A stretch of 64,000 nt of DNA, from IMG/VR virus record IMGVR_UViG_3300022868_000009, positions 124,001-188,000 of that record; one strand, 5' to 3'. Of the stretch, positions 6,817 to 59,675 are shown piece after piece; position 1 is the first letter of the stretch; each line of letters begins with the position of its first letter. Under the pieces are notes generated by a model. That model did no database searches. It saw nothing but the letters and a program-made list of their open reading frames with translations, and was not told the origin of the DNA. Position numbers and translations under genes: made by a program.

Positions 6817-8418
6817 TTAAAAGTTTAATGAATATTTTATATTACCACTGTTATATATTCTATAAATACCTCTTTCTAACATTATTTCGTGTTCACTTTT
6901 ATTAGGATCATAACCTTCTCTAACTAAAACATCTTTTCTAAAATTATACCTATATAATCGTTTTAAATTTTTACCATCAAAATAATGATAATTCGGTTTT
7001 GTGTTATGAACGAATTTAAATTCCAATTTTTCATATAGATTTCCTTTACTCCAGCTTCTATCAGCATAAGTAATTATTTCACCCGGATTATAATTTCTGA
7101 TAAAATATTTAAATAATTTTGATGCACCACCAACAACATTAATATTTAATTTGTTACAAAACCTTAACAATTCATACTCTCCTTCTATACTTTTAGACCC
7201 CATTAATTTTCTTTTTTTACCAAAGGTCATTAGAGATACTAATTCATCTTCATAATAAAGACCTATTTTAACAAAAGAACCAACAAAACCTTGAAGATGA
7301 TTATCATTTAAAAAATTTCTAATCAATTTATTATCTATTATCTCTTTAATTATAGTTTTTCTAGCATATATTTTATCAGACTTTCCAATCATATTTAATA
7401 TTCTAGACTTGACAATTTCTTTTTGGTTAAACCATTCATCTTCCCAAATATGTATTAATTGAACACCTTTTTTTAAACAATTGTTTGTTTTATTTAAATG
7501 ATAATCCTTATCCTTATAAAGTTCTGAATGCCAATACAAACCATTAAATTCAAAAGCTAGATTTAAATCTGGTAAATAAATATCTAATTCTTTTCCATCC
7601 AAGATCTCTTTATCACTTGTTATTATTTCATAATTATAGTTTTCTTTAATAAAATTCACGATTTCTAATTCTTTACCTGAAATCTTATAATCTAATGTAT
7701 TACAAACTGTGCATAATATTGTTTTTTGTATTTTATATCTTTGATATAAATTTTTGCTATTAATATTAAAATAATGATCTTTACCACAATCACATTTAAC
7801 ATCTATCGTTCGATCAGTATTTAAAATATAATCTGTTATATTATATTCCGATAATTTAAATAATATATCTTTTTCCCACCTTTTATATGTTAACAAATAA
7901 TATGATTCTGTTTGTGTATACCATTCTTTTCCATATTTTTCAAGATTAGTTTTCTTTATTTTCTCTCTAATTTCATATGAAGAAAGTATCTCTTCCACGC
8001 CATATTTTTCAAGATTTGTTTTTTTAATTTTTTCTTTGACATCTTTATCTAATAATGTACAAGTAACGCCATATTTCTTGAGGTTTGTTTGTTTTGTTTT
8101 ATCTTTTATTTCTTTTATGTGTTGTGGATTTTCAACGCCATATTTTTCTAACATTGTATTTTTTCTTTTAATAGAAGAACATTTTTTACAACTATAAAAA
8201 CCTTGTCTTTTTTTATTTTCTAAATATTTATGATATCTTAGTTGTTTTTCATCTGAACATATCTCACAAACAGCAATTACTTTAACATGTGAATTTTGTG
8301 GCAAATCATTAACATCAATGTCCAATGTTTCACCATTATTACAAACATAATTTTTAGATCTATAATATGTTACATTACGATATGTTATATTAACATCAAT
8401 TCTACTATTTTTAATCAT
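6817..8418 (-). CDS. Putative homing endonuclease (KYG repeats plus Vsr-like domain)
   Basis: TNLEKYG repeats, ELDIYLPDLNLAFEFNGLYWHSE, IHIWEDEW; paralog of 57954..59675. Confidence 0.75.
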   Translation of the reverse strand: MIKNSRIDVNITYRNVTYYRSKNYVCNNGETLDIDVNDLPQNSHVKVIAVCEICSDEKQLRYHKYLENKKRQGFYSCKKCSSIKRKNTMLEKYGVENPQHIKEIKDKTKQTNLKKYGVTCTLLDKDVKEKIKKTNLEKYGVEEILSSYEIREKIKKTNLEKYGKEWYTQTESYYLLTYKRWEKDILFKLSEYNITDYILNTDRTIDVKCDCGKDHYFNINSKNLYQRYKIQKTILCTVCNTLDYKISGKELEIVNFIKENYNYEIITSDKEILDGKELDIYLPDLNLAFEFNGLYWHSELYKDKDYHLNKTNNCLKKGVQLIHIWEDEWFNQKEIVKSRILNMIGKSDKIYARKTIIKEIIDNKLIRNFLNDNHLQGFVGSFVKIGLYYEDELVSLMTFGKKRKLMGSKSIEGEYELLRFCNKLNINVVGGASKLFKYFIRNYNPGEIITYADRSWSKGNLYEKLEFKFVHNTKPNYHYFDGKNLKRLYRYNFRKDVLVREGYDPNKSEHEIMLERGIYRIYNSGNIKYSLNF

Positions 8419-10668: not shown

Positions 10669-11655
10669 ATGAAAAAAGAAATATCTGATTATATTATATG
10701 TAAAGTATGTGGTGAAAAAGTAAGAAGAATTTATGGTGCACATTTAAAGAAACATGGATTAACAAGCAAAGAATATAAAGAAATGTTTCCAGATGAACCA
10801 TTAACAACAAAAAATGATAATTTAAAAACAAGTAAAAATTCAGGATTGCATATGAAACAAGAAAAATATAAGAAAATGTTTTCTGAAAAAATAAAAGGAG
10901 AAAAAAATCCAAATCATAAAACAAAAACTACTGAAAAAGACAGGAAATCAAGAAGTCCATTTTCAAAAGATTTTAAAAAATATAAAAATGAACAAGAATT
11001 AATAGAATTTAGAGAAGAAGCATTAAAAGATAGAAAACACACAACTAGATTAGATTATTATTTAAAACAAGGGCTTGATATGGAAACATCCAAAAAAATG
11101 TTGAAAAAAAGACAAACAACATTTACTTTAGATATTTGTGTAGAAAAATATGGCAAAGAAAAAGGTATAGTAATTTGGAAAAATAGACAAGTAAAATGGC
11201 AAGAAAATTTATTATCTAATGGTAATTTAAAATGTGGATATTCTAAAATAAGTCAAGAACTGTTCTATGGTATATTAGAATATTATGATTATGAAAATAA
11301 AAAAGATATTTATTTTGCTACAAAAAATCAAGAATTTTTCATATCCAAAAAAGGAACAGACACAGATCCACGAATTTTTTTACAATACGATTTTTGTGAC
11401 ATGAAATCAAAAAAGATAATAGAATATAACGGTGATAGATATCATGCAAATCCGAAGATATATGAATCAAAAGACAATCCACATCCATTTAGAAAAAATA
11501 TAACATCACAAGAAATTTGGAATAAAGATAAAGAGAAAACAAGGATAGCGCAACAGGAAGGTTTTGATGTTTTAACTATATGGGATAGTGATTATAAAAA
11601 AGAAAAAGAAAAAATTATTCAGAAATGTCTGAATTTTTTAAATTTAAAAATATGA
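10669..11655 (+). CDS. Free-standing endonuclease between split-intein halves
   Basis: CKVC..HLKKHG zinc finger; YDFCD..IIEYNGDRYHANP..LTIWDS; paralog of 4617..5789. Confidence 0.8.
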   Translation: MKKEISDYIICKVCGEKVRRIYGAHLKKHGLTSKEYKEMFPDEPLTTKNDNLKTSKNSGLHMKQEKYKKMFSEKIKGEKNPNHKTKTTEKDRKSRSPFSKDFKKYKNEQELIEFREEALKDRKHTTRLDYYLKQGLDMETSKKMLKKRQTTFTLDICVEKYGKEKGIVIWKNRQVKWQENLLSNGNLKCGYSKISQELFYGILEYYDYENKKDIYFATKNQEFFISKKGTDTDPRIFLQYDFCDMKSKKIIEYNGDRYHANPKIYESKDNPHPFRKNITSQEIWNKDKEKTRIAQQEGFDVLTIWDSDYKKEKEKIIQKCLNFLNLKI

Positions 11656-13952
11656 AAGTAACAATTAAACATATTATTATATTTCTCATTCAATTAATTG
11701 AATATTATGAATTTAGAAATATTGATAAAGATGAAAATAAACCAAATAAAAAGATAGTAGATATTATACCAATAAATAAATATGTAAAAACTGACTATGG
11801 TAATACACCTGTTTCTGAAATAGTTAGAACAATACCATTACAGAGATATGAATTATTATTAGAAAATGATGATAAAATTGAATGCGCAGACACACATATA
11901 ATATATTGTAAAAATCATACTCCAAAATTAGTTTTAGATTTAACCGAAAATGATGAAGTTATTACAATATCTGGACTATCAAAAATCAAACATTTTAAAA
12001 AACTAAGAGGAAAATTATCAATGTTTGATTTAACTATTGATGGACCAGAACCAAGTTATTACACAAATAATATATTATCACATAATACAGTATCAGCTGC
12101 AATTGTTATTCTTCATTTTGTATTATTTAATAATGATAAAGGTTGTATGGTTGTTGCAAATAAAGGAACTACAGTTATAGAAATTATTGATAAAATAAAA
12201 TCTATTTATAAACATTTACCATTCTTCTTAAAAAGAGGTGTAATTAACTGGAATCAAAAATCTATAACATTTGATAATGGTTGTAGAATAAAATCAGAAA
12301 ATAGAACTAAAGAACCTGCTATTGGTTTTACAATCGACCTTTTGTATTTTGATGAGTTTGCAAAAGTACCATCTAACATAATTAGACCCTATTATGGATC
12401 CGCTGTTCCAACAGTATCATCAATCAAAAATTCAAAAATTATAATAACATCTACCCCAGATGGTTATAATTTATTCTACGAATTATTAACTGGTGCAGAA
12501 AAAGCCGAAGGAGATAAAGATAAGAACACATATGAATCCATGAGAGTATATTGGTGGCAAGTTAAAGGTAGAAGAGATACTAAACTTTATTTTAATAAAA
12601 AAATGTTATCTAAATATGGTGTTAAGGAAAGAGAAATTCTTCAAGAACTAGAATTATATGGATACACAATAACAAAAAGAAAAGAGGGTGAAAAATTAGT
12701 TCATATCATAGCATTTGATGAAGATAACGAAAAAACACACTTAGAAAAAATAAGATCAATAAGATTATTTGATAAATTACCTTTGGTTGAAATATGTAAT
12801 GTTACTAATTGGCAAGAAGAAGAAACTAAATTAGTTGGTGGTGAATCAATCTTCAAACAAGAATATGATATTCAATTTATAACAGGTGATAAGTTATTAT
12901 TTGATAGTATAACATTAGAAAGAATACAGAATGCTACAGAAAAATTTGAACATATTCCAATTCCTAATTTTGATAAAAGATTAGCCTTACCTTATGATAA
13001 ATTAGAATTTATTAAAGATAGACCAGATTTATTTGAGATAGAAGAAGTTAAAAAATATCATATGATGTTTTCTATTGATTTAGCTGAAGGTTTAGGTAGT
13101 GATTACACAGTTTTAAATATATTTAGATTATTACCAAAAGACAAAGTTATAATAGAAAAGAACAAACAGAAATTTACAAACATTTATGACTATTTCAAAC
13201 TAGAACAAGTTGGATTTTTTCATTGTAATTACTATTCAGTTAAAGAATTTGCACATTTATTGTATATGATTGCATATGAAATGTTTGATCCTGAAAAATG
13301 TAAAATATCTTTAGAATATAATACTTATGGTGGAGAATTATTAGCACATTTACCAAATGTATTTGAAGGTGATAATGATTATTTTGATGCCACATTTATT
13401 AGAACAAAACACAACCAAAATGATAAATATAGAAAAAAAGGTTTAAAAATAACAAAAGGCAATAAAGTTAAACTTGTTATAAAAGATTATCAAGATGCTA
13501 TTAAAAAACATAGTATAATAGTACATAATGCATTAAATATACTTGAAATGAAAGTTTTTAGTAAAAGAGAAACACCTTCTGGTGATTTTACATACCAATC
13601 AGAAACAGGAAATGATGATACCGTAATGTCATTAGTTAATTTAAGTGCTAGTTTAACATCAGTCCAATTCAAAGATATTGTTGATGATTATATTGCAACA
13701 GTACTAAATGATGAAGATAGAAGAATGATTGAAACAAATGTATCAGAATTTAGTGATGAAACTGTAGATTATAGTTCAGCTATATCAAGTTACAAAAAAG
13801 TATATCTAGATAAATCTAAAAAACCTGGAGTTGGAAATAGTTTTAAATCAAGTCCGTTCGAACAACCAAATCCTTACCAAAAAAAAGGAAATCCATTTGA
13901 AAATAATCCATTTGGTAAAGGTACAACTGGTGTTAGTCCTTTCGGAAAATAA
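11625..13952 (+). CDS. Terminase large subunit C-terminal fragment fused to long C-intein (probable start 11652; intein ends 12086)
   Basis: CADTH block B, YYTNNILSHN/TVSAA; Walker B LLYFDEFA, ITSTPDG, nuclease DLAEGLGSD and NDD. Confidence 0.9.
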   Translation: MSEFFKFKNMKVTIKHIIIFLIQLIEYYEFRNIDKDENKPNKKIVDIIPINKYVKTDYGNTPVSEIVRTIPLQRYELLLENDDKIECADTHIIYCKNHTPKLVLDLTENDEVITISGLSKIKHFKKLRGKLSMFDLTIDGPEPSYYTNNILSHNTVSAAIVILHFVLFNNDKGCMVVANKGTTVIEIIDKIKSIYKHLPFFLKRGVINWNQKSITFDNGCRIKSENRTKEPAIGFTIDLLYFDEFAKVPSNIIRPYYGSAVPTVSSIKNSKIIITSTPDGYNLFYELLTGAEKAEGDKDKNTYESMRVYWWQVKGRRDTKLYFNKKMLSKYGVKEREILQELELYGYTITKRKEGEKLVHIIAFDEDNEKTHLEKIRSIRLFDKLPLVEICNVTNWQEEETKLVGGESIFKQEYDIQFITGDKLLFDSITLERIQNATEKFEHIPIPNFDKRLALPYDKLEFIKDRPDLFEIEEVKKYHMMFSIDLAEGLGSDYTVLNIFRLLPKDKVIIEKNKQKFTNIYDYFKLEQVGFFHCNYYSVKEFAHLLYMIAYEMFDPEKCKISLEYNTYGGELLAHLPNVFEGDNDYFDATFIRTKHNQNDKYRKKGLKITKGNKVKLVIKDYQDAIKKHSIIVHNALNILEMKVFSKRETPSGDFTYQSETGNDDTVMSLVNLSASLTSVQFKDIVDDYIATVLNDEDRRMIETNVSEFSDETVDYSSAISSYKKVYLDKSKKPGVGNSFKSSPFEQPNPYQKKGNPFENNPFGKGTTGVSPFGK

Positions 13953-16103: not shown

Positions 16104-16598
16104 ATGTTTAAAAAAATAAAAAATATTATGAAAACAGAAACAATGACAACAACAGAAATTAACAAAGATTCACATCATGCAACAGATTTACAAACTAGAT
16201 TTGAAGTATTATTAGAAGAAATTAAAGATTTTCTTAATAAAACACATATTGAAAAAAATGATAAACCAATAATTAACACAGTTTATCAATTTACAGGTGA
16301 TCTTTCAAAATTAAAACCAAAAGTACAACACTTAAATAATGCAGGTATTTGTAGAAGAAGAGTTTTGAAAAGAATGTTAAGAAAAGTTGAACATAAAATG
16401 TCTTTAATAAACATTAATAGATTATTTCACTTTATTGAAGTTTATATTATAGAAAAGAAATCTACTGTAAAAGTAACTTGTGAAAAAGATAGAAAAATTC
16501 AAATGTTAAGAAAAGAATGGAAAAAATTACAATCTAAATCAGATTTAGCTTTAAAAGAGTATAAAGAAGAAAAAGGTGATTTCTACAAACAAATATAA
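16104..16598 (+). CDS. Hypothetical basic protein
   Basis: ORF ending KEEKGDFYK. Confidence 0.65.
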   Translation: MFKKIKNIMKTETMTTTEINKDSHHATDLQTRFEVLLEEIKDFLNKTHIEKNDKPIINTVYQFTGDLSKLKPKVQHLNNAGICRRRVLKRMLRKVEHKMSLININRLFHFIEVYIIEKKSTVKVTCEKDRKIQMLRKEWKKLQSKSDLALKEYKEEKGDFYKQI

Positions 16599-16628
16599 AC
16601 AAAAATAGTGCTGTTTTCAGCACTAATT

Positions 16629-16700
16629 GGTCCCGTAGCTCAGTGGAAGAGCAGAAGCTTCTAACCCTTTGTGTCGCTGGTTCAAATCCAGCCGGGACCG
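16629..16700 (+). tRNA. tRNA with CUA anticodon in canonical register (putative amber suppressor; Arg-TCT only if read out of register)
   Basis: GGTCCCG/CGGGACC, GCTC/GAGC, A26, GAAGC-TTCTAAC-CCTTT, GTGTC, GCTGG-TTCAAAT-CCAGC, G73. Confidence 0.75.
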
Positions 16701-17003
16701 CTATAACCTCATTATATTGGTTGTTCTATTATACTTAATAGTTTCTTTTTGTCTATTTACCCAATTAATTAATTCAGACTTAATTTCTTTATATCTTTCT
16801 TCTGTCATTTTATCATCATAAAACTCACCTTGTTCAATTTGATGATCATCAGATAACCAAAAATCGGAAACTAACTCATTTAATGTCTCCTCTAATTGTC
16901 TAAAATTAGTTTCAACACCATTCAAATAATATTTCTTTTGATTTACAGCCCATTCTTCATCTTCTTGAGTTACATTTTCATTATATTTCTTTAAATGTCT
17001 CAT
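16701..17003 (-). CDS. Putative capsid-internal protein
   Basis: MRHLKKYNE N-terminus. Confidence 0.6.
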   Translation of the reverse strand: MRHLKKYNENVTQEDEEWAVNQKKYYLNGVETNFRQLEETLNELVSDFWLSDDHQIEQGEFYDDKMTEERYKEIKSELINWVNRQKETIKYNRTTNIMRL

Positions 17004-34183: not shown

Positions 34184-34663
34184 ATGAGATACAAATCATT
34201 AACATATAAAGGTGAAACCTATACAGAACAATACAAAATAGACGATATATTAATATCAGAAAATTTTAGTTGGATTTTAGATGCTGAAATTGAAAATGCA
34301 GACATTGAAATATCTAAAGAAACATTAATTTGGAACAATGGATTATGGTATAATGGTGCTTGGACTTATGGTGTTTTTAGAAATGGTGAATGGAGATATG
34401 GTGTTTGGAAAGGTGGTGTTTGGTATAACGGCACATGGAAAAATGGAAGATTTGAATCTGGTATAATTTTTGGTGGTAAATTTATAAATGGTATTATATT
34501 AGGACAAGAAATAAGGGGTGGTGAATTTATAAATGTTGATATTTCTGACCAAGTAAAACGAAGTGATATTGGTGATTCCAATAATGATAATATACCTGCT
34601 CAAGGTGAGTCAATTTTAGAAAATGTCCTAAGTTTTAAACTATTTATTAATCTTAAAAATTAG
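34184..34663 (+). CDS. GxWxx pentapeptide-repeat protein
   Basis: WNNGLWYNGAWTYGVFRNGEWRYGVWKGGVWYNGTWKNGRF. Confidence 0.7.
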   Translation: MRYKSLTYKGETYTEQYKIDDILISENFSWILDAEIENADIEISKETLIWNNGLWYNGAWTYGVFRNGEWRYGVWKGGVWYNGTWKNGRFESGIIFGGKFINGIILGQEIRGGEFINVDISDQVKRSDIGDSNNDNIPAQGESILENVLSFKLFINLKN

Positions 34664-34681
34664 TCATTTAATATCCTTCTA

Positions 34682-34775
34682 GGGACATCCTTCGCTTAGT
34701 TCCCGTTCAAGACCTTAAATAGGTAGATGATTGGAGGAAGGTGGGTTACTGAATGTTCGAGTCATTCGTGTCTAA
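34682..34775 (+). ncRNA. Candidate tRNA-like ncRNA
   Basis: Perfect T-arm GAATG-TTCGAGT-CATTC, acceptor-like GGACAT/GTGTCT, CCTTC/GAAGG stem; locally GC-rich. Confidence 0.4.
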
Positions 34776-35043
34776 TCTTTTCATTAAATCCTTAATTAAT
34801 TTTTCAATTATTTTAATAGAATTTTGTAAATAAATACATTCAACACATCTTTTCGACATACCATGACTGGTCATGAGATCTGTTCTAATACTTTCTAAAA
34901 GTTTTTTACTATTATTTAATTTACTAATTATTTCAGTTTTTTCCATAATTGAATATAACCATTAATATCTAAAATAAAAAATAAACAAAATTTTTATTTA
35001 AACATATAAAATGATGTAAAACTAAAAAACAATAAACAAAAAA

Positions 35044-36111
35044 TTGATTAGTTACTTCGGAGGAAAAGCAAAAATGGGTGAGTGGATATATCCATTTATT
35101 CCAAAAAACATTAAAACATACGTAGAACCTTTTTCAGGTGCTTTTTGGATTTATTTTAATACAAAAAATGATTTCACACATTGTGATAAAGTTGTATATA
35201 ACGATATTAACAAATATATGTTAAATCTTATGTATTGTGCTAAAGATCATCAAAAATTACTTGCAAAAATTGAAAGTGAGTTAAAACCAGGTGGATTTTT
35301 ATACAATCCACACAAATTTAAAACACCAGAATATAAACAAGTTTATAAAGATTTGTATTATGAATATAAACATTGTAGAGATAAAAATAAATTCTTAGAA
35401 GATCCTATTTTTGAAATAGGTGACTATGATGCAGCAGTTAAATATGCATTTTTAATAACTTCAGCGTTTAATGGTTGTTTTCCTAAAGCTGCAGGTTTTT
35501 CAGGTATTGCAACCAATGGAAAATATAAATTACAAACATTTATTAATAAACTAAATAAAAAAGCAATTCAAGAAAAACTTGAAAGTATCACAGACTTTGA
35601 ATTATTTGATTTTGAAGATTTAATTAAAAAATATGATAGTGAAGAAACTTACTTCTATTTAGATCCACCTTATTTCGATCCAAAAGGTAAAAGACTTGAT
35701 TGGTATGGTGTTAAAGATGATAGTATGTTTGGTGTTGGTGGTCATGAAAGATTAGCTAATTTATTACAAAATACTAAAGCAAAATGGTCTCTATCTTACT
35801 ATAATTATCCACAATTAGAAAAATGGTATCCAAATACAAAATACAATTGGGAATCTAAAGATTTCTTTAGAAGTTCTGCTTCTTTTTCAGACAACAAAGA
35901 TGTGAAAGGAACTGAAATATTGATAATGAATTATAACTTTGAAGAGGAAGAGTATAAAAATAAGATGAAAAAATCTATACCTACAATAAAAGAAAAATTT
36001 AAAGATTGTACTGAAGAAGAATTTCCAAATAGAGAAAACGATAAAATATTACTCAACAAATTAAAAGATATTGGTGATAAAATGAACGAAAACGATGACT
36101 TCTGGAACTAA
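35044..36111 (+). CDS. Dam-like (D12 class) N6-adenine DNA methyltransferase
   Basis: YFGGK, YVEPFSGA, VYNDIN, YLDPPY. Confidence 0.9.
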   Translation: MISYFGGKAKMGEWIYPFIPKNIKTYVEPFSGAFWIYFNTKNDFTHCDKVVYNDINKYMLNLMYCAKDHQKLLAKIESELKPGGFLYNPHKFKTPEYKQVYKDLYYEYKHCRDKNKFLEDPIFEIGDYDAAVKYAFLITSAFNGCFPKAAGFSGIATNGKYKLQTFINKLNKKAIQEKLESITDFELFDFEDLIKKYDSEETYFYLDPPYFDPKGKRLDWYGVKDDSMFGVGGHERLANLLQNTKAKWSLSYYNYPQLEKWYPNTKYNWESKDFFRSSASFSDNKDVKGTEILIMNYNFEEEEYKNKMKKSIPTIKEKFKDCTEEEFPNRENDKILLNKLKDIGDKMNENDDFWN

Positions 36112-40761: not shown

Positions 40762-40765
40762 ATAG

Positions 40766-40836
40766 TACTCTCGAAGGGACTCGAACCCCCACTAAGGGTT
40801 TAGAAGACCCTTGTGCATCCATTACACCACGAAAGC
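40766..40836 (-). tRNA. tRNA-Arg(TCT)
   Basis: AGGGT-CTTCTAA-ACCCT; full cloverleaf. Confidence 0.85.
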
Positions 40837-57953: not shown

Positions 57954-59675
57954 TTAATTCAAAAAACCATTTTTTAAAATACCCCACTCAAAACATATAT
58001 GACCAGAATTATTTATTCTGTAAATACCCCTTTCTAACATTATATCATGCTCTGTTCTATTTGCATCATAACCATCTTTAACCAATGTTTGTTTTCTATA
58101 ATTATATCTATGCCTTCTAACACCATCAACTATGTAATGATAACCTGGTTTTGTTGTGTGACTCCTATTAAAATTTAAATTATCATAAAGATTGCCTTTA
58201 CTCCAACTTCTATCAGCATAAGAAACTATTTTTTTCGGATCATAATTTTTAATAAAATATTTAAACAATTTACTAGCACCACCAACAATATTTGTGTTTA
58301 ATTTGTTGCAAAACCTTAATAACTCAAAATCATATTTTTTAATAACACCTATACCCAATCTATTCTTACCAAACGTCATTAAAGAAACTAATTCATTTTC
58401 ATAATATAATCCTAATTTAACACTAGATCCAACAAAACCTTGTATATGATTATTATCTAAAAATTCTCTTATTAGTTTATTATCGTTAATTTCCTTTATT
58501 TGTGTTTTTCTAGCATAAATTTTATTTGGTGTTTTACCTAATTTATTTAATATCATTGATTTAACTATATTTTGTTTATATTTCCAATCATCTTCATAAA
58601 TATGGATTAATTGAATATCCTTTTCTTCACATTTTTCTGTTTTATTTAAATGATATCTATCAGATTTATATAATTCATTATGCCAATATAAACCATTAAA
58701 TTCAAAAGCTAATTTTAAATCTGGTAAATAAATGTCTAATTCTAATGGCTTTATTATATTTCTTTTATTATTTAAAATTGTTTTGTCATAATTCGATTTA
58801 ATATAATTTAAGAAATCAATTTCAAGTCCAGAAACTGATTTTAAAATAGGATTGCATTTAGTACATAACAAAGTATTAGATCTTCGTCTACTATTCAAAA
58901 GAACATAACTTATTTCAAATTCGTGTCCTTTTTCACACATCATTAAATATTTTTTTTCTTCTAAATTTAAACTTATTACATCATAATCTTCATAATATTT
59001 TAAATATTTATTCATGATTGTTTTTCTTAAACTTTTAATCATTCTGTCTTTTAAATCAATATTATGTAATGGTACAATCACACCATATTTTTCTTTCATT
59101 GTTCTTTGTCTTTTAATTTTAACTAAATCCAATTTTGAAACATTATCAACTCCATATTTACTCAAACACGTTTCTTTATATCTATTATAAATTTCAACTG
59201 ATTTTAATGGACTACTGACATTATAATTATCCTTTAGTGTTTTTAAAGATTTTTTATGAATTTCTTCATTTTGAATAGGTGAATTATAACCATATTTTTT
59301 AATATTAGTTTTGATAATCTTTTCTTTTACTAAAATATTTTCTGATGGTGTTTTTGTACCAAATTTATCTAAACATGTTTGCATTCTTTTATTTTTAACA
59401 TGATTACTTTTATTCATGCATTTCTTAGAACAAAAAGTATAATATCCAATATTAGAATTCTTAAATTTGACAAAATTACCACATTCACATATTACAATAT
59501 TTTTAATATCATTATACCAATGATAAACTTGTTGCTTAAATGGTAAATCATCTAAACCATTTTCAATTACATATTTTTGTATTTCTTCTAGTATACTAGT
59601 AAAATACTTTTCGAGATAATTCTTTCTGAACATTTTACCAGATGAATCTAGATTTTCACTAAAAATACTTTTCAT
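57954..59675 (-). CDS. Putative homing endonuclease between sheath and tube
   Basis: KYG repeats, ELDIYLPDLKLAFEFNGLYWH; paralog of 6817..8418. Confidence 0.75.
   Translation of the reverse strand: MKSIFSENLDSSGKMFRKNYLEKYFTSILEEIQKYVIENGLDDLPFKQQVYHWYNDIKNIVICECGNFVKFKNSNIGYYTFCSKKCMNKSNHVKNKRMQTCLDKFGTKTPSENILVKEKIIKTNIKKYGYNSPIQNEEIHKKSLKTLKDNYNVSSPLKSVEIYNRYKETCLSKYGVDNVSKLDLVKIKRQRTMKEKYGVIVPLHNIDLKDRMIKSLRKTIMNKYLKYYEDYDVISLNLEEKKYLMMCEKGHEFEISYVLLNSRRRSNTLLCTKCNPILKSVSGLEIDFLNYIKSNYDKTILNNKRNIIKPLELDIYLPDLKLAFEFNGLYWHNELYKSDRYHLNKTEKCEEKDIQLIHIYEDDWKYKQNIVKSMILNKLGKTPNKIYARKTQIKEINDNKLIREFLDNNHIQGFVGSSVKLGLYYENELVSLMTFGKNRLGIGVIKKYDFELLRFCNKLNTNIVGGASKLFKYFIKNYDPKKIVSYADRSWSKGNLYDNLNFNRSHTTKPGYHYIVDGVRRHRYNYRKQTLVKDGYDANRTEHDIMLERGIYRINNSGHICFEWGILKNGFLN

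Follow-up and report, generated by a model that had tools for sequence, protein, structure and literature searches.

A CUA-anticodon tRNA gene of a salt-lake megaphage and the 31-39 mismatch frequent among phage CUA and Trp(CCA) tRNAs

Suppressor tRNAs of large phages have been placed in a model by Borges et al., in which a low GC content makes TAG rare, a suppressor tRNA is acquired and in-frame recoding follows; such tRNAs are also present in standard-code relatives of recoded phages, and reassignment of TAG to Gln is the phage pattern (10.1101/2021.08.26.457843). Separate work has dealt with the anticodon stem of tRNAs and reported that anticodon stems of 4 bp are functional and widespread in bacteria, and that opening of the top pair raises stop-codon readthrough, CUA constructs included; stems opened at the bottom were set aside in that study and the word 'phage' is absent from its text (PMC13092985). 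Charging of amber suppressors is known to shift between LysRS and GlnRS with the identity of the bottom pair, 31-39 (PMC1483225).

Here, we analyzed a window of 64,000 nucleotides, which spans bases 124001-188000 in a virus record of 344,634 bp (IMGVR_UViG_3300022868_000009, 25.3% GC) that carries terminase and tail-sheath genes and 35 tRNAs as called by ARAGORN, and found in it a tRNA gene with a CUA anticodon. In common with the published suppressor-tRNA phages, this phage has a CUA tRNA, a large, low-GC genome and TAG as a rare stop. The published TAG-recoded phages come from the gut and are reported to encode RF2, whereas this phage comes from a salt lake, encodes an RF1-type factor and yielded no in-frame TAG in 433 kb. 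The tRNA joins the known class of suppressor tRNAs of large phages, and the phage would not yet have entered the stage of in-frame TAGs, which would place the pre-recoding stage of the published model in a salt-lake megaphage instead of a gut phage.

The tRNA gene and its neighborhood

ARAGORN called a tRNA at 16629-16701(+) with the anticodon CTA at position 33, and the gene matched Rfam RF00005 with 60.9 bits (gathering score 29; E of about 1e-10 for the whole window), model positions 1-71 being fully matched. The covariance model (CM) alignment yielded a 7-bp acceptor stem, a 4-bp D stem, a 7-nt D loop, A26, an anticodon stem formed by positions 27-31 and 39-43, the 5-nt variable loop GUGUC, a 5-bp T stem and the discriminator G73, and flagged a single non-standard pair, 31-39, in which C31 (16658) faces C39 (16666). 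The other four pairs of the anticodon stem, G27.U43, A28-U42, A29-U41 and G30-C40, include a single G-C pair, and the anticodon arm in isolation has a predicted free energy of 0, with no stable fold. The conserved U8, A14, G18G19, A21, U33, R37, G53-T54-T55-C56, A58 and C61 are all present, and so are A20, A59 and G73, while CCA is not encoded by the gene. Its GC content is 57.5% as opposed to 25% for the genome, and an identical copy is carried by a second, overlapping record of this phage (G001).

In the canonical register, ARAGORN and the Infernal alignment both assign positions 34-36 to CUA, the anticodon of a Sup-CUA tRNA. The initial annotation of this stretch had read the same register by eye, as U33-CUA-A37 with a C31-C39 mismatch, and had pointed to ARAGORN as a check, which returned CTA. 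It had also held that reading UCU instead would cost nucleotide 26 and introduce two AxC mismatches; this proved correct, and the UCU-register cloverleaf is in addition 5 kcal/mol worse than the canonical one (-20.0 vs -25.0 kcal/mol). A20 and G73, which it had listed as kept, can both be read in the sequence. Positions 16629-16700 are a genuine phage-encoded tRNA with a CUA anticodon, of the amber-suppressor type by that anticodon.

ARAGORN labels this gene tRNA-Pyl, since it names such tRNAs from the anticodon alone. tRNA-Pyl has a 6-bp anticodon stem, a 3-nt variable loop, a small D loop without G18G19 and an atypical T loop. The CUA anticodon is the single likeness between the two, and we rejected the label given that the phage tRNA has G18G19, a 5-nt variable loop, a T loop beginning with TTCAAAT and a five-position anticodon stem.

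A small hairpin had been noted directly before the tRNA, and it is real (Table 1). A terminator scan over 2 kb returned it as the single terminator-like site (one found vs 0.3 expected), and the T-run that follows it lies on the minus strand only (about 16605-16596), the hairpin being terminator-like in that direction only. On the plus strand its end lies 3 nt upstream of the 5' end of the tRNA, and we infer that it guards the 3' end of the upstream mRNA after RNase P cleavage. The ORF upstream of the hairpin closes a rightward block that holds the terminase gene (11625-13952), whereas the ORF on the other side of the tRNA runs in the opposite direction, and its TAG stop (16703-16701) adjoins the 3' end of the tRNA. 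Since the terminator-like hairpin of this convergent ORF sits past the tRNA, leftward transcription would yield RNA antisense to the tRNA. Neither a ribozyme nor another RNA family turned up when the tRNA flanks were searched with Rfam at a permissive threshold, and BLAST of 5.5 kb of flanking sequence against phages in GenBank returned only two weak matches, both to huge uncultured phages. Following synteny through terminase relatives gave no tRNA close by in L002-L004.

A contig of a diverged strain (metagenome run X5) spans 16135-16683 and has seven differences within 16533-16600, the 68 nt before the tRNA; tRNA positions 1-55 differ once (G7>A), with the anticodon arm unchanged. Together with the GC content and a CCA-adding-type enzyme encoded by the phage, this strain conservation is thin evidence in favor of a maintained, usable tRNA gene. 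In runs X5, X6 and X7 we also observed contigs that join ~15630 to ~16973 via CCTTTT, a form that would omit a 1.3-kb segment with two small ORFs and the tRNA. The joint may be spurious, and we rejected it as a deletion variant, the flanking matches being ~20 nt only and AT-rich.

Table 1. Positions of the features discussed. Plain coordinates are those of the window; G000:C1 denotes the main virus record, and other identifiers denote further records.
Feature	Position	Strand	Basis or description
tRNA gene, 72 nt to discriminator G73	16629-16700	+	ARAGORN; Rfam RF00005 full-length alignment
Anticodon arm	16654-16670	+	CM alignment, pair table, energies
Anticodon loop UUCUAAC (U33, A37, C38)	16659-16665	+	anticodon CUA at 16661-16663
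Hairpin, 8 bp, 4-nt loop	16606-16625	-	-10.8 kcal/mol; terminator scan, folding energy
Upstream ORF, 164 aa	16104-16598	+	TAA stop; family match none
Convergent ORF, 100 aa	16701-17003	-	family match none
tRNA-Arg(TCT), comparator	40765-40836	-	anticodon stem fully paired; ARAGORN; Rfam 57.5 bits; alignment
Second tRNA-Arg(TCT)	genome 316891-316965
Large paralogue 1	6817-8418	-	PHROG 3339/559, homing or HNH endonuclease
Large paralogue 2	57954-59675	-	PHROG 3339/559, homing or HNH endonuclease
ATP-dependent-protease-like gene, 718 aa	27411-29567	+	PHROG 4871, E 1e-247
tRNA-Trp(CCA)	G000:C1:113713-113784	+	A31xC39 non-pair, giving a 4-bp anticodon stem
Second CUA tRNA	G000:C1:112615-112687	+	Rfam 45.4 bits; loop UUCUAAC
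Short RF1-type release factor	G000:C1 ~34554-35241 (L277 1438-2125)	-	prfA 159 bits, prfB 92 bits
GluRS-core-like protein, 275 aa	G000:C1:343002-343730 (L278 1495-2322)	+	gltX 215 bits, GluQRS 121 bits
CCA-adding-enzyme-type nucleotidyltransferase	G000:C1:240321-240722	-	PF01743, 106.7 bits, in a 447-aa open frame
tRNA-like gene, CUA register	L040 8486-8515	-	long insertion in place of the T arm
tRNA-like gene, CUA register	L049 2497-2526	-	long insertion in place of the T arm
tRNA with four-base anticodon (ggaa)	L006 1336-1410 (G002)	+	ARAGORN
S-RIM4 tRNA-Arg(UCU)	MK493321.1 160829-160902		84% identity outside the anticodon arm

The genetic code of the phage

The second record (348 kb) overlaps the main record with an offset of 85,475 bp, and the phage is therefore at least ~433 kb long; CheckV put the completeness of each record at 48-49%, so the unseen parts of the genome could differ. 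The sequence occurs in salt-lake metagenomes and in one marine metagenome, and none of the RNA runs contains it. To see how TAG is used, we counted the stops of 472 genes of the main record, obtained by a simple gene call (TAA 353, TGA 81, TAG 38), and those in the 89 kb unique to the second record (TAA 124, TGA 28, TAG 11), such that TAG ends 49 of the 635 called genes overall. Extensions past TAG have a median length of 5 codons and coding potential in none, and backup stops were not commoner after TAG (13%) than after TAA (12%) or TGA (14%).

No valid in-frame TAG was found in the ~433 kb covered by the two records (each ~48% complete by CheckV), nor was a gene that requires UAG decoding, and so these records lack the mark of TAG-recoded (code 15-like) phages, namely TAG codons in frame within genes, typically those for structure and lysis. 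Under table 11, the genes for terminase and tail sheath are uninterrupted, and a global recoding test based on long-ORF coverage gave no signal (0.867 under table 11, 0.883 with TAG as sense and 0.898 with TGA as sense). Three pairs of same-frame ORFs split by TAG were considered as recoding candidates and rejected as antisense shadows of genes on the opposite strand; a fourth candidate, a TAG-joined pair of 159 and 179 codons in the second record, is made up of two neighboring genes, there being an ATG two codons past the TAG. In all parts that can be read, the phage follows the standard code, and TAG is a rare but real stop.

Among the accessory genes that accompany a code change, neither RF2 nor a dedicated aminoacyl-tRNA synthetase was found; the only RF-domain gene is of the RF1 type, and searches for class Ib (Trp/Tyr) and ArgRS domains found none. 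The main record does encode, near its end, a GluRS-core-like protein that comprises only the catalytic core of Glu/Gln-tRNA synthetases and scores below the curated cut-offs of both gltX and GluQRS (Table 1). The CCA-adding-type enzyme and the tRNA genes make up a tRNA maturation kit of the phage. Within the window, we further observed two large paralogues (PHROG E values of 1e-127 and 1e-133), one of which adjoins the tail sheath gene, and an ATP-dependent-protease-like gene that ends in two consecutive TAG codons.

The 31-39 pair in phage tRNAs and the ancestry of the gene

We scanned IMG/VR for tRNAs that combine the CUA register with a GAGC D-stem strand and a standard T arm, and likewise for Trp(CCA) tRNAs, and ran ARAGORN on all fetched loci, on whose register the survey relies. 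In these sets, which were chosen by pattern and de-replicated by exact sequence only, positions 31 and 39 did not pair in 53 of 103 CUA tRNAs (51.5%; mostly AxC, CxA, CxC and CxU) and in 40 of 113 Trp(CCA) tRNAs (35.4%), as opposed to 46 of 1015 tRNAs with all other anticodons and 0 of 69 Arg tRNAs. The comparison of CUA tRNAs with all others gave a Fisher p of 1e-34, and the same comparison within tRNAs that have U32 (52/89 vs 29/401) a p of 2e-25; both sets are pattern-chosen and these values are inflated, because shared descent remains after exact-sequence de-replication. Among the other anticodons, the non-pair was found in 16% of class I tRNAs with A36 and in 3.7% of the remaining class I tRNAs, and mismatches at positions 28-42 to 30-40 were almost never seen. 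The nearest CUA neighbor of our tRNA (L097) has G73 and A31xC39, and a CUA tRNA with A31xC39 is also present in a distant relative of the phage (G002, terminase 47% identical). ORF coverage did not separate TAG-recoded loci from other CUA-tRNA loci, the loci being too short.

Judging by this survey, phage CUA and Trp(CCA) tRNAs typically combine an open 31-39 pair with U32, and this architecture is not damage left by a slip. With an opening about 10 times commoner in these two groups than in other phage tRNAs, the trait is a hallmark of them, and the survey extends the work on 4-bp anticodon stems to phages and to 31-39, the position set aside there. Since opening of the top pair affects readthrough (PMC13092985) and the identity of 31-39 affects charging (PMC1483225), the open pair could alter decoding strength, up or down, or amino-acid identity. 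The tRNA-Trp of the Blastocrithidia type, with its 4-bp stem, has in common with the phage tRNA one unpaired terminal stem pair and a link to stop-codon reading, but it opens at the top (27-43) and keeps a 7-nt loop, whereas the phage tRNA opens at the bottom and has G.U at 27-43, and so does not belong to that type.

Several further tRNAs were noted as well. The second CUA tRNA of the phage has 29% GC, an acceptor stem made entirely of A/T and a poor anticodon stem, and sits 1 kb upstream of a His/Trp/Phe tRNA cluster. Two loci of other records (L040 and L049) harbor a tRNA-like gene that ARAGORN gives as a tRNA of 96 nt with the 4-nt anticodon 'tcta', and which may be interrupted or intron-bearing. 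The distant relative mentioned above (508 kb, 68 Rfam tRNA matches) carries a tRNA with a four-base anticodon within a dense tRNA array.

As for the body of the CUA tRNA, its closest GenBank phage tRNAs match it at 78-79% identity and carry Arg, Met and Asn annotations, and its best E. coli match is annotated as tRNA-Ile. With the anticodon arm masked, the tRNA-Arg(TCT) of cyanophage S-RIM4 and a CAT (Ile2/Met) tRNA of Ackermannviridae tie at 84% identity, and the 25 nearest bodies among ~1,250 distinct phage tRNAs comprise Arg 8, Trp 7, CUA 4, Phe 3 and others 3. A search of IMG/VR for the exact pattern, with the same D arm and T loop, found matches only in the phage's own records. The ordinary tRNA-Arg(TCT) that had been reported at 40766 was recovered by ARAGORN and Rfam at 40765-40836(-), and a second one lies elsewhere in the genome (Table 1). 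The earlier description of the gene as Arg-like is not established: A20 and G73 are present, but the CAT tRNA ties with the S-RIM4 tRNA, and Trp and Phe bodies are close. Arg ancestry is plausible and not exclusive.

The initial annotation had gone further and derived the gene from tRNA-Arg(UCU) by a one-base slip, with the resulting C31xC39 mismatch possibly keeping amber suppression weak, and this we consider unlikely. As for weak suppression, an effect of the open pair could go in either direction, and opening of the top pair raises readthrough (PMC13092985). The claim of a slip has to be set against the dimensions of the arm: the D and T stems are separated by a canonical 23 nt in both the CUA tRNA and tRNA-Arg(TCT), and because these lengths are equal a slip would need a deletion and a compensating insertion, that is, two indels. 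The mismatch itself needs no slip, because half of phage CUA tRNAs have one, as opposed to none of the 69 phage Arg tRNAs. What does speak for an Arg origin is the S-RIM4 tRNA, which is among the closest full-length GenBank phage matches and has an identical D stem and T stem, A26, A20 and G73 and an acceptor 5' strand identical at 6/7 positions. Arg tRNAs moreover provide 8 of the 25 nearest bodies though they are only 69 of the ~1,250 references, and the hexamer TTCTAA is common to the loops of the CUA tRNA and Arg(UCU). Yet the stem of the S-RIM4 tRNA is perfectly paired, its D loop has 9 nt and its anticodon loop reads CUUCUAA and not UUCUAAC; its 84% is equaled by the CAT tRNA, with Trp and Phe close behind. 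A C35-to-U change in a Trp-type arm would account for the loop at least as economically as the slip, and G73, the variable loop, the D-loop length and the 31-39 non-pair of the CUA tRNA would fit a Trp-derived, su7-like suppressor, its body identity less so. Descent from a phage tRNA-Trp(CCA) by this single substitution, with the open 31-39 pair, U32, the variable loop GUGUC and G73 all inherited, is a possibility to which we give somewhat more weight, though we still think it rather improbable. It fits with the 35.4% of phage Trp(CCA) tRNAs that have the non-pair, with CxC examples among them (L246, L257, L170) that have a 7-nt D loop AGUGGNA, the variable loop GUGUC and G73, with the phage's own tRNA-Trp (A31xC39, loop UUCCAAA) and with G73 in 95 of 101 phage Trp tRNAs. 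It fits less well with the identity of the best Trp bodies (77-78%, below the 84% of the best Arg body), with G1-C72 in place of the A1-U72 common in Trp tRNAs, with C38 instead of A38, and with A20, an Arg feature.

The E. coli amber suppressor supU/su7 is a tRNA-Trp whose anticodon was changed from CCA to CUA, and it is charged largely with Gln. The phage tRNA shares with it the CUA anticodon, a class I body and G73, and its loop is one substitution away from a Trp loop. supU/su7 is a laboratory mutant, whereas the phage gene is natural and has G1-C72, A20, C38 and the open 31-39 pair. By this likeness, GlnRS charging of the phage tRNA via U35 and G73 is plausible; CUA derivatives of tRNA-Trp are also discussed in PMC13092985.

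Predicted function and an RF1-type release factor with a +1 frameshift site

E. coli tRNA-Arg is identified by A20, C35, U/G36 and A/G73. Two of these four elements, A20 and G73, are found in the CUA tRNA, whose anticodon C34 U35 A36 has neither C35 nor U/G36. The identity set of GlnRS consists of U1-A72, G2-C71, G3-C70, G10, Y34, U35, G36, A37, U38 and G73 (PMC1483225), of which the CUA tRNA has six of ten (G2-C71, G10, C34, U35, A37 and G73) and is missing four, carrying G1-C72, U3-A70, A36 and C38 instead. From the set of four Lys elements listed in the same paper it has one.

A suppressor-type tRNA, a standard code, a rare TAG and a typical open pair are best explained by a tRNA with the predicted function of an amber suppressor, a reading that we regard as probable. 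In this scenario, the gene would be transcribed rightward, at the far end of the block with the terminase gene, RNase P would cleave 3 nt past the upstream hairpin, and CCA would be added, possibly by the CCA-adding-type enzyme that the phage itself encodes. A host synthetase would then charge the tRNA, most likely with Gln, given the precedent of CUA tRNAs and U35, here joined by G73, G2-C71 and G10; charging with Arg (A20, A59, G73) or Trp (G73, C34, A36) would be possible. The charged tRNA would compete with RF1 at UAG, and readthrough would be cheap for the phage because the next stop after TAG lies at a median of 5 codons. Three features count against the suppressor explanation: no gene seen in the 433 kb would need, and so visibly benefit from, UAG decoding; the anticodon arm, with its one G-C pair, is very weak; and the phage's RF1-type factor favors termination at UAG.

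The weak arm and the RF1-type factor, along with the in-frame TAG that was not found in 433 kb and the backup stops that are no commoner after TAG than after TAA or TGA, would also suit a tRNA that does not work as a suppressor, being either a decaying or neutral gene or a tRNA-like decoy or spare, for instance against host anticodon nucleases. We deem this distinctly unlikely in view of the high Rfam score, the conserved tertiary positions that are all intact, the conservation of the gene in a diverged strain despite a variable flank, and the similar architecture of ~50 other phage CUA tRNAs; in addition, a gene of 57.5% GC in a 25% GC genome shows no drift toward the base composition of its surroundings. 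Still more remote is a reading in which the tRNA decodes AGA as arginine via the shifted UCU register, or the four-base codon UAGA using U33. The shifted register can be drawn on paper with three of five pairs, and the loop would effectively have 9 nt if 31-39 is open; nevertheless, the shifted cloverleaf is less stable by 5 kcal/mol and is without nucleotide 26, ARAGORN and the Infernal alignment both pick CUA, and the phage already has two ordinary Arg(TCT) tRNAs. Nor did we see a gene that needs a +1 shift at TAGA, the sole +1 site, in the RF1 gene, having C after TAG and the classic slippery codon CUU. We hold this reading to be very improbable.

That +1 site belongs to the short RF1-type release factor gene of the phage, which lies outside the window (Table 1). 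The protein is missing domain 1, has the PPT (PxT) and GGQ motifs and scores higher with prfA than with prfB, and its gene is split over two frames: frame 0 stops at CTT TAG C, from where the protein reads on without a break after a +1 shift, while zero-frame readthrough of the UAG reaches a TGA after one codon (CGG). Four homologues (L285-L288, 51-60% identity) keep the site as TGT CTT TAG CGG, and another (L294) has TTT TAG C. Across more than 12,000 bacterial genomes, a survey reported programmed frameshifting in prfB and no convincing prfA case, with no TAG among 8,164 prfB motifs (PMC12421855). The phage site has an architecture like that of prfB but uses RF1's own stop codon and, as that survey found no convincing case in prfA, it would be the missing RF1 counterpart.

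Genes with RF-1 domains were found in 6 of 50 phage records with CUA tRNAs and in 0 of 48 Trp-selected controls (p = 0.027, with contig size as a confounder). No CUA tRNA was found in the contigs of the RF1 homologues, records that are only 4-64% complete. One could picture a circuit centered on UAG, in which RF1 is made only by the +1 frameshift and the CUA tRNAs, whose 31-39 pair is open, compete for the UAG of the frameshift site, so that tRNA and factor antagonize each other. Being made only via the frameshift, RF1 would sense slow UAG termination through its own synthesis, and what UAG means in the course of infection would be set, or switched, by the suppressor tRNA together with RF1. 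An interaction of the CUA tRNA with RF1 in this phage is speculation, and the circuit as a whole strikes us as decidedly doubtful. To us, the RF1 frameshift site and the 31-39 trait matter more than the CUA tRNA itself.

Other members of this RF1 family in IMG/VR (L289-L291, L293 and L295-L297) have a single frame with one or two in-frame TGA codons, and in three of them (L289-L291) the second TGA aligns with the CTT TAG site. We take one in-frame TGA of the family to lie at the conserved GW position. These TGA codons indicate either TGA-recoded phages or a regulatory stop.
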